A stretch of DNA of 64,000 nt from Bugula neritina (GCA_964035545.1 OZ037773.1:5919751-5983750); one strand, 5' to 3'. Counted from the stretch's first letter, positions 33,843-55,128 are shown. The notes: generated from the letters alone by a model not told the origin. Made by a program: numbers and translations.

Positions 33843-34328
33843 TTAAAATTTAAAATGCTGCTTTCTAGTACATAACGCAGCCTTACAACAGAACAATATA
33901 TAAATAATTATTATGAACAATATATGGCAAAGATGGCAGCATTCAGGCGATGTGGAACTTGAAGAAGAATAATTATATTTTGGTAAAATTTCAACTGGTA
34001 AACTTTTCTGATTTAGTAGCCATCCAACAGTTGAACCAAAAAACAGTCCCAAAAATGCAAGAGAAATTGTTTGTCTACGCATCATAGCACTTAGCTCAGT
34101 TTTATCCGCCACTGGACATGTTATCAGTCCATCTTCGTTTGACAGAATCATTATCATACAGAGAAAGAGTCCTAGCACATAAGCTATTTTTGAAGCCTTC
34201 TTTCCAATTATACTTGTACAAGTGTCTTTACCAATCCAGCCTAGTATACAGCCAAAAAAGAATCCAAACAATTCAGCTAGAACTTCTTGTGAAATGCTAT
34301 CAGCGTATGACAGCACCATTTTCTGCAT
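33843..34328 (-). CDS. Family A small ~4-TM protein, copy A1 (~158-161 aa)
   Basis: Intact ORF with SYADSISQEV, GFFFGCILGW, GLITCP, LAFLGLFFGSTVGW, LPKY and CKAALC motifs shared with A2, A3 and A4. Confidence 0.8.
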   Translation of the reverse strand: MQKMVLSYADSISQEVLAELFGFFFGCILGWIGKDTCTSIIGKKASKIAYVLGLFLCMIMILSNEDGLITCPVADKTELSAMMRRQTISLAFLGLFFGSTVGWLLNQKSLPVEILPKYNYSSSSSTSPECCHLCHILFIIIIYILFCCKAALCTRKQHFKF

Positions 34329-34468
34329 ACCAAATTATATATATTAGTTTGTTGTATCATGTATATGTTAAAAGTTATGCCATATACAATGGAATATAAT
34401 ACATTATATTATAGTCATGTTTTATACTTGCAGAGGTTCTAATGTGGTCTGCATGTAGCAATAAACAT

Positions 34469-34648
34469 TCAATTACAAATTTATAACTACAGTGTAATTG
34501 AAACTTACCAGCTTATGTTATCAGTACTTAGTCAATATTCTGTGCATGACACCTTCTATAGAAGGTGTCATGCACAGAATATTGACTAAGTACTGATAAC
34601 ATAAGCAGGTAAGTTTCAATTACACTATAGTTATAAATTTGTAATTGA
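34469..34648. repeat. Spacerless palindrome, 90-bp arms, 2 mismatches, centre 34558/34559
   Basis: ...GTGCATGACACCTTCTA|TAGAAGGTGTCATGCAC... read outward on both sides. Confidence 0.95.
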
Positions 34649-34651
34649 TGT

Positions 34652-35009
34652 AATTTAACCTCTACAAATAATGGCTTTCATAATTAGTCAGCAAACAGCA
34701 AACTAGATTTACTCAAACAAATTAGAAAGCAGCACTTGGTTTCTATAACTCTATACTATATATATATATATATATATATATATATATATATATATATATA
34801 TATATATATATATATATATATATATATATATATATATATATATATATATATATATATATATATATATATATATATATATATATATATATATATATATATA
34901 TATAGTATAGAGTTATAGAAACCAAGTGCTGCTTTCTAATTTGTTTGAGTAAATCTAGTTTGCTGTTTGCTGACTAATTATGAAAGCCATTATTTGTAGA
35001 GGTTAAATT
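34652..35009. repeat. Perfect palindrome, ~105-bp unique arms around a (TA)n core
   Basis: Arms are exact reverse complements; the ORF track gives an identical peptide on both strands (34736..34918+ and 34743..34925-). Confidence 0.95.
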
Positions 35010-35250
35010 TTATTGATTTCTTTTGTCTATATAATAATGCCAGTTTTTATATAACTCCAATGTGATTAATATCAGGTTAAACACACAATAGCAAACTTCC
35101 ATATTACTGATCATATACAATGTACGTGTGTAACCTATAAAATGGGTGTAATCAAGCCAAGGTCTTAGGTATACTGAACCTGACTGGGATAGCTCTATCA
35201 TAGCTTGTTTATTGGTAGCAGAATGAGACTTTGTCTGATCTAAATATAAA

Positions 35251-35782
35251 GCACATTCACGCATTATATTGAAAATATATGTTAATTTCTGTATGCTCAG
35301 CCATGTATTTGCATACGGTAGTCATAGATTCCCTTTATCAACTATATGACGCTAGTTTACTAACTCAAAGTGATAACAATTTTATTGCCAAGTATAGCTA
35401 AGCTATCGAAATTTTTGCGTTAGGAAATTTAAAAAAATCAAGAAACGAGATTTGAGTTGCTTTTTATTGTAGAAAAAGGTTCAAAATTTTGCAAAAATAG
35501 CTTTTAACAGAACTTGCACATTCACGCATTATATTGAAAATATATGTTAATTTCTGTATGCTCAGCCATGTATTTGCATACGGTAGTCATAGATTCCCTT
35601 TATCAACTATATGACGCTAGTTTACTAACTCAAAGTGATAACAATTTTATTGCCAAGTATAGCTAAGCTATCGAAATTTTTGCGTTAGGAAATTTAAAAA
35701 AATCAAGAAACGAGATTTGAGTTGCTTTTTATTGTAGAAAAAGGTTCAAAATTTTGCAAAAATAGCTTTTAACAGAACTTGC
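35251..35782. repeat. Apparently exact 265-bp tandem duplication
   Basis: GCACATTCACGCATTATATTG...ACAGAACTT starts at 35251 and again at 35516. Confidence 0.93.
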
Positions 35783-51859: not shown

Positions 51860-51871
51860 GGGGAATTCCCC
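51860..51871. promoter_or_regulatory. Palindromic kB site GGGGAATTCCCC upstream of B4
   Basis: Perfect NF-kB consensus about 70 bp upstream (minus strand) of a TATATA at 51783-51789. Confidence 0.55.
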
Positions 51872-52847
51872 TGCTTAAATATTCCAGTAAAAGATTTGTA
51901 CCAATTGTGCAAATAATAGAAATAACAAAGTATAGATTTGTTCATAGAAATCATTATATTATATACCTAATTAAATAAACTTTTGTGCATGTGTTCTAAT
52001 GTTTAAAACTTGTCTTCAATTGATTACAATAGTTAAAGACTGACCTTTTAAACACAGACCTCTGCTTCATAGTTTTTAGTTTAACTTCAACTGGAAATTT
52101 TCAAAACTATCTAAATTATCGTATGGGTTATAGATCAACTTATAATAAAAATATTCTCATCAATTATGGAACAGTTTTTATTCATTATGAAATAAGTTGA
52201 TCTAAAGAATGTAGTAGGAAGAAATATACAACCTAAAAAAAATTTTACAACTGCAACTATATTTAGAATTTATATGTTTCCAGCTAAGTATAGGGTTTTA
52301 ATAGAAATTAATTAACAATGCAGAAGATTATGAAGATGTAAGGCTGAGTTCACACCGAGGCAAAAGGTCACAGGTCAAATGTCAAGGGCCCTTTAATTTT
52401 GTCAACATTTTACTGTAATCAATCAAAGTTATAAAAGCTATAACTTCTACCCCCCCCCCCCCCCCAAAAGCATAATATACATATTATCTACCAAATCTAC
52501 AGAGAAATTGTTGACAAACAAAATGCTTTATTGGATATTCCTAAAAATATGTGTGTAAAATAATTTGAATAATCTAATCACTATTCAAGCTGGTTGTTAA
52601 TTTCAGTTTTAGTTAACAATTGTGCTTGCAATTAGTAAAGGCTAAACTTTCAAGCTGGTTAAAACTATTACAGTTTTGCAAAATTATACTCAAGGTTGCA
52701 TTTTATTTTGCTTTATTTAATGAAGATTTGACAAACAATTATTTTACCGGCAGTAAATCCCGATACAATAAAAGCATAGTTGAAATATTATTATGGAAAT
52801 ATAATATAATAAAGAGGACTTATAATGAACAAAAAAGCTGTAAGATG

Positions 52848-54006
52848 TCAATCAGATGTGTTCTTTTTTGCACATTGAGCAGCTTTACTGCTGACAATTA
52901 TAAAGAATGACAGCAGCATACAAATGTGAATACATTGAAAAATCCCTGCACATGTGATGGTGGGGCAACTCCCATTAGTCTTAGGTAACTCATCTACCTT
53001 GGTTGGTAATAGAAAGGATCTAATCTGCCATCCGACTGCAGCACCAACAAACGCTGCCAGCATGGCAAGATACATGTTCTGTCGATGAAGCATGTGTTTG
53101 AATTCAGCTTCATCGGAAGTCTCCGGGCATGTCAAAAGCCCGTTACTACTGTTCAAAGCCAATACTAGACAAGCTACAAGAACTAGGACGTAAACTATTA
53201 CAACTACAGCATAGAAGCAGCTTGAGCCTTTTCCTTTGAGGTTAGCTTTAAGGTTACAACTAAACCAACCCACAATGCACCCAATAAAGAATCCAAGTAA
53301 ATCCACTAAGACTTCTTGGGAGATGGCATCAGCGTAGGAGGACCCAATTTTACTCGAATCCAAGTCTGTATCAGCAATCTACAAGTTCACTGGCTTTTAC
53401 ATTTACTGGCTATTATATTTACAAAGCTGGTTAAGATTCAATAAAGAAATTTACAAAAACAAATTGTTTACACAATTGATGCATGCAAGGAATTGTCAAA
53501 AATGTCATTTAAAAAAAACACACTTTGAAAATGGACAGAGCAAAAATGGGCGCTCTATAATTCAGTGGAGCCCAAAATTGATAGCTTATTGCAAGTGTGG
53601 AAAATTTAGAATGTAGTATATCTATTTAGAAAAAAGAAAAATTAACTCAGTATTGAAGTAAGACTTAGTAAGACTATTTTATAGGCTTTTATATAATCTT
53701 AGTTAGTAGCTTTTCAATGATTTCAACTCCTTTTGCTACATAGTTAGCATCTAGGTTGGATATATGTAAATATATATGAATTACATCTGATATGATTAAC
53801 CAGGTATCAATTATTTAGCCCAGTTTGTTTAGAAATGCCTGATTTTGCATGATGTTAGCTCAACTTACTTTCACTGTGAAATTCACTGTGACTGTGAAAT
53901 TCACTTTCATTTAATGTTTTCGGTCATTTATAGTTATAGCCTATAAATGTTCATATCTTGCACAAAACTGGGATAACCTTAAATGACTTACCTGTTTGAA
54001 CTGCAT
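52848..54006 (-). CDS. Family A small ~4-TM protein, copy A4 (~181 aa; 15-nt first coding exon 54006-53992, main exon 53378-52848)
   Basis: ATGCAGTTCAAACAG|GTAAGT splices in frame to TGTAG|ATTGCT..; SYADAISQEV, GFFIGCIVGW, GLLTCP, LAAFVGAAVGW, LPK, SKAAQCAK. Confidence 0.78.
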
Positions 54007-54300
54007 ACCTGTAGGTTCTACTTGCTAAGTACAGATACTTGTGAGTTATAGTTTATATACTAGCCAAGTCAGCATCGACATCATGCATCTACTGCATGAC
54101 TGACTTCATCAAATCATAATAATTGAATGGTGCTATAAGCAGCTGCAAGCTGGGAGTGACTGAGTGCAATAGTTTCTGGATCTCGAGTTTGGTGTTACAA
54201 GTTATATACACCACAAACTGCCGCACTCAATCGCCTTTAACTCGAAGCTGCTTACAGAACCATGCATAATTAAAATTGTAGAAGCGACATAGAATTGATG

Positions 54301-54340
54301 GGGGAAATCCCCTTTCGTCAGCATCGGCTATTAACACGTG
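54301..54340. promoter_or_regulatory. kB site (GGGGAAATCCCC) + CGTCA + CACGTG module in the head-to-head region between A4 and B5
   Basis: Perfect NF-kB consensus GGGAAATCCC; spacing conserved with 40972-41011. Confidence 0.6.
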
Positions 54341-54747
54341 TATACTGCTCTGTGGTTGAAAGAATAGTACAATATTGTTGGCAGATGGTAGAAAGATGTA
54401 GTACCTTCGTAATCGACTAACTATAAACTAACTAACTTCATAGCGAGTGACCTAATGGTATACAGTAGTTTTGTCTACAAACACTGCAAAGACAGGTGAG
54501 CTAAAAGTTTATGTAATACTTCAGATACATAGAATAAGTCTCAGCATGTATTTGAGGCATTGAAACAAAACCACTTCAACTGAGTTTTAATTCAGTGGTT
54601 TGAAGTACAAAGGATTTGAATTTCAATATCTAGTCTTACTATATAATTATTGACCTAGTTTATCCTATAACTTGATGTTACTTTGAACATGCTGTGTGTT
54701 GTAGAGCAAGGCCAGTGTTCTACTCCTGAAGTGCATCTCCCATCACA

Positions 54748-55128
54748 ATGAGCATTGATGATGTCCCCTGGTACAGAATCCTTCTGTGCATCCTTTGCTG
54801 TGTACATGGATGGGCATCAGGATTTGTGATAGGATCAGTGCTGAGCTTCAGGAGTTGTAACAAGTCACACAATTCGTGTCTTTCTTTTCTAAAGCTAATC
54901 TGTATTCTAATTGGTGGTTGCTGTTGTCTCGACTTGCACCAAAAAACTGAATTAAGTAGCCACTTGGAAGGCATAGTGTTTGTTATATCAACAATAGTTG
55001 GACTGATGTTTCAAAAAGCTATCCGTGATGACCATGATTACGAGGGCCACAATGAATGTGCAAATTTTACACAAATTTTGATCACCACAATAAGTGTTAT
55101 TGTAGAATCAGTTCATAATTTATCGTAG
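54748..55128 (+). CDS. Family B small ~4-TM protein, copy B5 (126 aa)
   Basis: CCVHGWASGFVIGSVL, CLSFLKLICILIGGCCCLDL, IVFVISTIVGLM. Donor at ~54495, acceptor at ~54703. Confidence 0.8.
   Translation: MSIDDVPWYRILLCILCCVHGWASGFVIGSVLSFRSCNKSHNSCLSFLKLICILIGGCCCLDLHQKTELSSHLEGIVFVISTIVGLMFQKAIRDDHDYEGHNECANFTQILITTISVIVESVHNLS

Follow-up and report, generated by a model that had tools for sequence, protein, structure and literature searches.

A 64-kb stretch of the Bugula neritina genome (GCA_964035545.1, OZ037773.1:5919751-5983750; here called the window, with positions counted from its first nucleotide) contains a cluster of small genes belonging to two families, A and B, for which no relatives were found outside the B. 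neritina complex. The window has ca. 31% G+C and is located within contig 9 of the 216-Mb genome. The cluster covers ca. 21 kb of it (33.8 to 55.1 kb), with nine intact open reading frames (ORFs), four of family A and five of family B, and a profile search of the whole genome recovered no copies of either family outside the window. The interpretation that we favor, with moderate confidence, is a Bugula-restricted cluster of two unrelated orphan families encoding small four-helix integral membrane proteins. The genes of the two families are likely co-regulated.

Coding status and selection

All nine ORFs listed in a preliminary description of this DNA were recovered by an ORF scan of the window. 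At the base composition of the window, the probability of a stop-free frame of 113 to 171 codons is ca. 1e-4 to 1e-6, so chance does not explain them. Selection was estimated as the ratio of nonsynonymous to synonymous divergence (dN/dS, Nei-Gojobori method) between the genes in the window and their orthologs in sibling lineages, at dS values of 0.14 to 0.42. The pooled ratio was 0.28 for family A (range, 0.23 to 0.37; Fisher P = 2e-13) and 0.65 for family B (range, 0.50 to 0.92; Fisher P = 0.004). Within family A, the values were 0.27 for A1 (ortholog P0003/L004, 84% identity), 0.37 for A2 (P0006/L003), 0.23 to 0.33 for A3 (P0004/P0005), and 0.27 for A4 (P0001/P0002, 90% identity). Those of family B were 0.54 for B1 (P0015 in L002), 0.92 for B2 (P0014/L010, 53% identity), 0.69 to 0.90 for B4 (orthologs in L002 and L009), and 0.50 for B5 (P0013, the EB796_007856 protein of B. 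neritina). Each intact paralog for which comparable DNA exists (A1 to A4, B1, B2, B4, and B5) has a 1:1 ortholog with an open frame. Many paralog pairs are near or beyond synonymous saturation and their motif columns are still invariant, in agreement with the earlier remark that strongly diverged copies keep their motifs. A and B are therefore real protein-coding genes under purifying selection.

Restriction to the B. neritina complex

The preliminary description recognized neither family, and this holds after a systematic search. Using hmmscan against Pfam-A with E values up to 1, the nine proteins matched no known family and gave no transposase or viral hits. PDB sequence profiles revealed no relative of A or B, and Foldseek against the PDB, the ESM Atlas (by features and by shape) and VIA-align were negative or returned generic helical bundles below a meaningful level. 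There were no relatives among the viral contigs of IMG/VR, and the family A profile was negative in metagenome contigs. Among 5.8 billion clusters and 1.84 billion representatives, in a search that did not extend to other bryozoan genomes, relatives were found solely in the B. neritina complex, as expected from the lineage restriction proposed earlier. Two of them are annotated as “hypothetical protein” (EB796_018848 for A3 and EB796_007856 for B5), and the others come from Joint Genome Institute (JGI) and Logan contigs of Bugula-associated DNA samples. A 435-amino-acid (aa) protein with seven stretches matching the B profile (P0011) turned out to be a low-complexity tandem-repeat protein and was discarded as a false positive. 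We found nothing in the literature on the A or B proteins. Both are orphan families, with no homolog outside a narrow clade and with selection acting on their ORFs.

The aligned DNA of these relatives, spacers included, differs from the window by 12 to 18%. Together with the dS values above, this places the window in a sibling lineage within the B. neritina complex, or else in a very close relative. The genome size reported for B. neritina is 214 to 221 Mb (PMC7576161). Gene linkage is conserved in the relatives, with A4 and B5 head to head in L001 and B4, A3, and B1 together in L002.

Gene content and structure

The four family A genes are all on the minus strand. A1 (33843 to 34328) encodes 161 aa from its first ATG, although the conserved start (MVLSY) corresponds to the second one. 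A2 (36663 to 37112) encodes 149 aa, with splice signals that predict an intron at 37126 to 37286 in the 5' untranslated region (5' UTR). Both A3 (49294 to 49794, within an open frame that extends over 49294 to 49797; predicted 5'-UTR intron, 49808 to 49960) and A4 (52848 to 53348, in an ORF extending over 52848 to 53363) have 166 codons from the conserved start. Family B comprises two types. B(i) genes are on the plus strand: B1 (41338 to 41700, 120 aa), B2 (43221 to 43673, 150 aa, the most diverged copy of the family) and B5 (54748 to 55128, 126 aa), with predicted 5'-UTR introns at 41156 to 41273, 43044 to 43133, and 54496 to 54658, respectively. B(ii) genes are on the minus strand: B3 (46423 to 46782, 119 aa; intron, 46811 to 47309) and B4 (50761 to 51102, 113 aa; intron, 51133 to 51639). 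A 120-aa ORF antisense to B2 (43193 to 43555, minus strand) most likely exists as a side effect of the sense frame.

Alignments of the upstream regions showed a splice-site pair conserved over paralogs and species in each of the three gene types. In B(i), the donor CAG|GTGAGC is followed after 90 to 163 nucleotides (nt) by the acceptor CCTAG|, with the ATG 64 to 90 nt beyond. In A2 and A3, the donor CA(A/G)|GTGAGTT (CAG|GTGAGTT in A2) is ca. 155 nt from TACAG|, which lies 10 to 15 nt before the start and is also kept in A1 and A4. Finally, in B(ii), AAAAG|GTAAGTG is ca. 500 nt from TTTTAG|, located 25 to 30 nt before the ATG. The conserved GT/AG pairs predict, for each gene type, a noncoding first exon, a short intron and one coding exon, and are consistent, if indirect, evidence for spliced transcripts. 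The essentially single-exon structure described before thus applies to the coding part, whereas the 5' UTR of every gene type is predicted to contain a short intron. Two of the orthologs have AUGUSTUS models built with transcriptome hints (PMC7576161). That the ORFs are pieces of a single longer gene could be ruled out, since a stop codon ends each of them, a conserved ATG opens each B gene, and an upstream exon and splice pair are conserved separately for each gene type.

Two further features of the B(ii) upstream regions can be mentioned. A block of ca. 95 nt including the core promoter, exon 1, and the donor site is near identical in B3, B4, and their orthologs (51625 to 51735 and 47303 to 47402). 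The proteins encoded by B3 and B4, in contrast, share only 46% identity, which suggests that the noncoding first exon is subject to strong constraint or gene conversion. In addition, one contig of a sequencing run that contains the stretch (X1, a DNA and not an RNA run judging from its even coverage over genes and spacers) skips 515 nt (51109 to 51625) immediately 5' of the B4 start. This gap almost matches the predicted B4 intron, with an offset of 15 to 23 nt, and may reflect an indel allele, a contig derived from a paralog, or an alignment artifact (one side is only 30 nt long).

Motifs and predicted architecture

The motifs named in the preliminary description were confirmed in the paralog alignments. 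When orthologs are added, 20 columns are invariant in family A, among them two occurrences of GxxxGW as well as GL.xCP, LP, and KAAxC. In family B, GW..G and G-L are invariant, besides clusters of cysteines. AlphaFold2 models built with the small family alignments contain four long helices in both families, at residues 14 to 36, 40 to 63, 76 to 109, and 128 to 159 in A (predicted local distance difference test [pLDDT], 60) and at 7 to 36, 43 to 67, 71 to 96, and 101 to 125 in B (pLDDT, 64). Hydropathy agrees with the four segments of family A and gives two to four in family B. Both are therefore predicted, at low model confidence, to be four-helix membrane proteins, as had been suggested.

The N- and C-terminal halves of family A are related to each other (hhalign probability, 92%; E value, 6e-7; 48 columns, with the two GxxxGW helices aligned). 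Family A is thus a duplicated two-helix hairpin, the first helix of which ends in GxxxGW. In contrast, comparisons of A halves with B halves and of one B half with the other gave probabilities of <1%, and hhalign found no relation between A and B, whether as whole families or as halves. A longer GxxxGxxxG pattern is found in helices 1 and 3 of A1 and in helix 1 of B(i), and the invariant positions of the glycine motifs are G26, G30, G98, G102, and W103 in A and G21, W22, and G25 in B. Cysteine accounts for 3 to 8% of the residues in both families and is clustered at helix ends, as CCCC in B(i), CC in B(ii), and CKAAxC before the basic tail in A. From their position, these juxtamembrane clusters are candidate S-acylation sites. 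The preliminary description also proposed A and B as partner subunits of a complex. A complex prediction for A4 and B5 scored 0.00, with the partner's own fold uncertain and alignments unused, and this score speaks neither for nor against such binding.

A composite promoter element

Across the window, nine matches to the strict Rel consensus GGGRNWYYCC fall at four places. All of them lie within the cluster, and 0.68 matches would be expected. Two of these places each head a 43-nt block, formed by a 12-nt palindrome, TTTCGTCAGC (with a CGTCA half-site) and a CACGTG E-box. At B1, the block is at 40972 to 41014 (plus strand) and begins with the kB-like palindrome GGGGAAGTCCCC, followed by TTTCGTCAGC and CACGTG. 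In the spacer between A4 and B5, it is at 54301 to 54343 (plus strand), with GGGGAAATCCCC, TTTCGTCAGC, and CACGTG in the same order. The two kB-like sites are paralogous and precede the start codons of B1 and B5 by 365 and 445 nt. The block is almost unchanged in B1, B5, and their orthologs (L002 and L001), an altered form is found upstream of the B2 ortholog, and none was detected elsewhere in the genome at the sensitivity used. A2 and A3 have just a near match to the kB motif in their promoters, and the strict consensus is not present at A promoters. The genome does encode Rel-homology domains. The kB sites noticed in the preliminary description are, therefore, real, enriched, and conserved at the B(i) promoters, which could not be extended to the site upstream of B4 (see below).

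An isolated copy of the B(i) promoter module, not followed by any gene, is located at 39776 to 39841 (plus strand; 86% identity to L001:411-476), and a kB-like GGGACCTTCC is found at 39772. An A-like peptide encoded at 39728 to 39898 is a reverse-strand reading of this copy and not a remnant of an A gene.

How the cluster grew

Self-comparison of the window revealed three collinear blocks (38376 to 38632 with 50803 to 51045, 39088 to 39228 with 52304 to 52441, and 40942 to 41815 with 54271 to 55224), which indicate that a module was copied as a unit. In this module, a B(ii) gene is preceded on its own strand by an A gene, from which a B(i) gene diverges head to head. One copy is intact (B4, A4, and B5), and the other is made up of a B pseudogene, a lost A, and B1. 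A3 and B3 form a further pair of an A gene and a B(ii) gene, A2 and A3 have flanks in common over 1.3 kb, and B2 is a tandem copy of B1. The 1.4-kb diverging spacer between A4 and B5 is 82% conserved overall between species. The co-duplication of A and B proposed at first holds in part, for the module copied as a unit, although pairing is not strict.

The B pseudogene (ca. 38453 to 38672, minus strand) was detected as a profile match of the B3/B4 type, and three-frame translation confirmed its status: the frame is interrupted by one in-frame TAA and shifts at least twice. Upstream of it, at 38914 to 38925, the donor block of the B(ii) first exon is still present, and its counterpart in B. neritina (L002) is also broken. 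A possible A remnant had also been proposed nearby, and here the outcome was mixed. No A-like coding remnant was detected by tblastn, a maximally sensitive hidden Markov model search or permissive blastn, but 160 nt derived from an A-type 3' flank survive at 40147 to 40306 (minus strand; 78% identity to the A2 3' flank, E value of 2e-31, and 68% to the A3 flank) and are all that remains of a lost A copy. At the place expected for this gene, there is an open frame of 114 codons (40409 to 40750, minus strand; 88 aa from the ATG) that resembles neither family A nor any other sequence tested. Birth-and-death evolution, another of the early suggestions, finds only modest support. The 1:1 orthologs of the intact paralogs in sibling lineages indicate that the duplications are old, and the pseudogene was broken in B. 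neritina too.

Other repeats were detected in the cluster. A segment of ca. 413 nt is present five times in the same orientation (44774 to 45186, 47483 to 47885, 42667 to 42924, 34981 to 35237, and 45177 to 45371). It is confined to the cluster genome-wide and is therefore duplicated material rather than a genome-wide repeat. Located 140 to 690 nt upstream of A1 are two spacer-less palindromes with an AT-rich core (90-nt arms at 34469 to 34648 and 188-nt arms at 34643 to 35018). The orthologous region in L004 has single arms and is ca. 358 nt shorter, and the palindromes reflect a genuine inverted duplication or else a foldback created during assembly. Also upstream of A1, there is a perfect 265-nt tandem duplication (35251 to 35780), with copies that are 100% identical.

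The cluster had been placed between GM2A and TKFC. The right flank is indeed TKFC, with Dak1 and Dak2 matches, and this link is kept in B. neritina, where B5 adjoins a Dak1 gene (L008). GM2A is weakly supported on the left, where one exon has a weak match, solely to GM2 activator chains in the PDB (E value, 0.024), and a Pfam search was negative. Gene order in the last 18.8 kb of B. neritina VXIV02002799.1 (L002) is unlike that of the window: part of B3 precedes B4, B1 and A3 are not separated by the B2-B3 interval, and the dead B copy has the opposite orientation. A true rearrangement or a draft misassembly may account for the difference.

Comparison with known membrane protein families

The MS4A/CD20 proteins are clustered, tandemly duplicated, four-pass, oligomer-forming membrane proteins. 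Small size, four predicted helices, and a tandem cluster of diverged paralogs are common to them and to A and B. However, there was no CD20 (PF04103) profile match at E values up to 1 and no PDB or fold match, and A and B have a single coding exon and two unrelated families interleaved. The tetraspan topology itself is putative, with helices modeled at pLDDT values of 60 to 64 and, in B, two to four hydropathy segments. The IFITM/CD225 “dispanins” are small, S-palmitoylated, clustered, and inducible restriction factors. Here, the likeness lies in the small size, the juxtamembrane cysteine clusters, the gene cluster, and the immune-type promoter motifs, but CD225 (PF04505) gave no match at E values up to 1, and A and B have four predicted helices instead of two. 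The claudin/PMP22/EMP families (PF00822 and PF13903) gave no Pfam match, and the W-GLW-C-C signature of their extracellular loop is absent from the A and B alignments.

Transmembrane glycine-zipper proteins are a GxxxGxxxG class of channel and pore formers, reportedly described as such by Kim et al. in PNAS in 2005. A1 and B(i) contain GxxxGxxxG, GxxxGW is invariant in A, and GW..G is invariant in B. This is a motif class and not a homologous family, and oligomer or pore formation by A and B is putative. Orphan families of marine invertebrates are taxonomically restricted, locally tandem expanded, and fast evolving. A and B are like them in having no homologs outside a narrow clade, in their tandem expansion, and in their fast evolution, but they differ from typical cases in that two unrelated families have co-expanded as a module, share their gene structure, and include a conserved composite promoter element.

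Weighing the interpretations

Several observations weigh against the favored interpretation. One is that the assembly has ATA in A3 and ATT in A4 at the position where every ortholog starts with ATG. Likewise, a second, upstream ATG found in the A4 ortholog corresponds to TTG here. Both frames are otherwise intact and conserved (dN/dS, 0.23 to 0.27), and contigs of the X1 run have 49792 T>C and 53346 A>C (plus strand), which give ATG in A3 and A4. The two A3 alleles differ by nine nonsynonymous and three synonymous changes and a 3-nt insertion. The assembled haplotype may carry two linked null or weakly translated alleles, or translation may start elsewhere. To this we must add that constraint on family B is weak (dN/dS up to ca. 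0.9 in B2 and B4), that pLDDT values of 60 and 64 leave helix packing and topology uncertain, and that X1, a DNA run, is the sole run found to contain the stretch. Pairing is loose, with A1 and A2 lacking an intact B neighbor and B2 lacking an A neighbor. The kB-like site at 51860, upstream of B4, was not found in the orthologous loci, and promoter motifs alone do not show induction or a role in defense. As to mechanism, the proteins may oligomerize in the membrane via glycine-zipper helices and may be S-acylated on their juxtamembrane cysteines (CCCC in B and CKAAxC in A), two steps that are deduced from sequence motifs. The genes would be switched on together by Rel-, CREB-, or basic helix-loop-helix (bHLH)-type factors under stress or microbial challenge, and their products would act as a lineage-specific inducible membrane module.

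The alternative that survives best, with a probability of about one in three, is that A and B are neighbors via duplication only. There would be no A-B binding or defense role, and the proteins would be ordinary tissue- or stage-specific membrane components, e.g., of larval or zooid epithelia. The absence of sequence relation between the families, the unpaired A1, A2, and B2, the A promoters without the strict kB consensus (a near match in A2 and A3), and the clearly different constraint on the two families all fit this explanation. What it does not easily accommodate is that at least one module, with both B types and the spacer between A and B, was copied as a unit, that the diverging A4/B5 spacer has been conserved between species, and that all three gene types have an unusual gene structure in common.

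Our favored interpretation of two orphan membrane protein families could also be extended to a much more specific one, in which A and B form a Rel/NF-kB-inducible, hetero-oligomeric glycine-zipper channel or pore, unique to bugulids, that acts as an immune or symbiont-control effector, while the start-loss null alleles of A3 and A4 segregate as in fast-evolving immune loci. We consider this version improbable.

Less probable still is a drift to loss of some of the genes, chiefly those of family B and the A3 and A4 alleles of the assembly, which would then be young, weakly functional orphan ORFs that contribute little at present. In favor of such decay are the dN/dS of 0.5 to 0.92 in B, the 53% identity of B2 to its ortholog, the B pseudogene and lost A copy, the missing start codons, and the nonsynonymous and synonymous differences between the A3 alleles (9 versus 3). 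Yet all five B and all four A frames are open here and in the sibling lineages at dS of ca. 0.2 to 0.4, the pooled dN/dS of family B is significantly below 1 (P = 0.004), the motif columns are invariant across synonymous-saturated paralogs, and promoter and splice signals are conserved. An origin from a mobile element or integrated virus is very unlikely, for although the ORFs are small, AT rich, single exon, and without cellular homologs, with repeats and palindromes inside the cluster, every copy is at one syntenic locus, the 413-nt repeat and the promoter module are confined to it, searches of IMG/VR and of Pfam for transposase or viral domains were negative, and 5'-UTR introns are predicted.

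Significance

A and B are new at the family level, in the sense of having no detectable relatives, which is not the same as a demonstrated new mechanism. Orphan families are common in poorly sampled phyla, and this tempers the surprise. The Bryozoa are among the least studied animal phyla at the molecular level. These are two well-delimited families in a cluster whose growth can be traced, and the composite promoter element (kB-like, cAMP response element [CRE]-like, and E-box) provides a direct handle on their regulation. If the genes are inducible, they would offer a compact entry into bryozoan innate immunity or into control of the symbiont that produces bryostatin in Bugula. Otherwise, the cluster would be a clean example of orphan families that were born, amplified, and partly lost.

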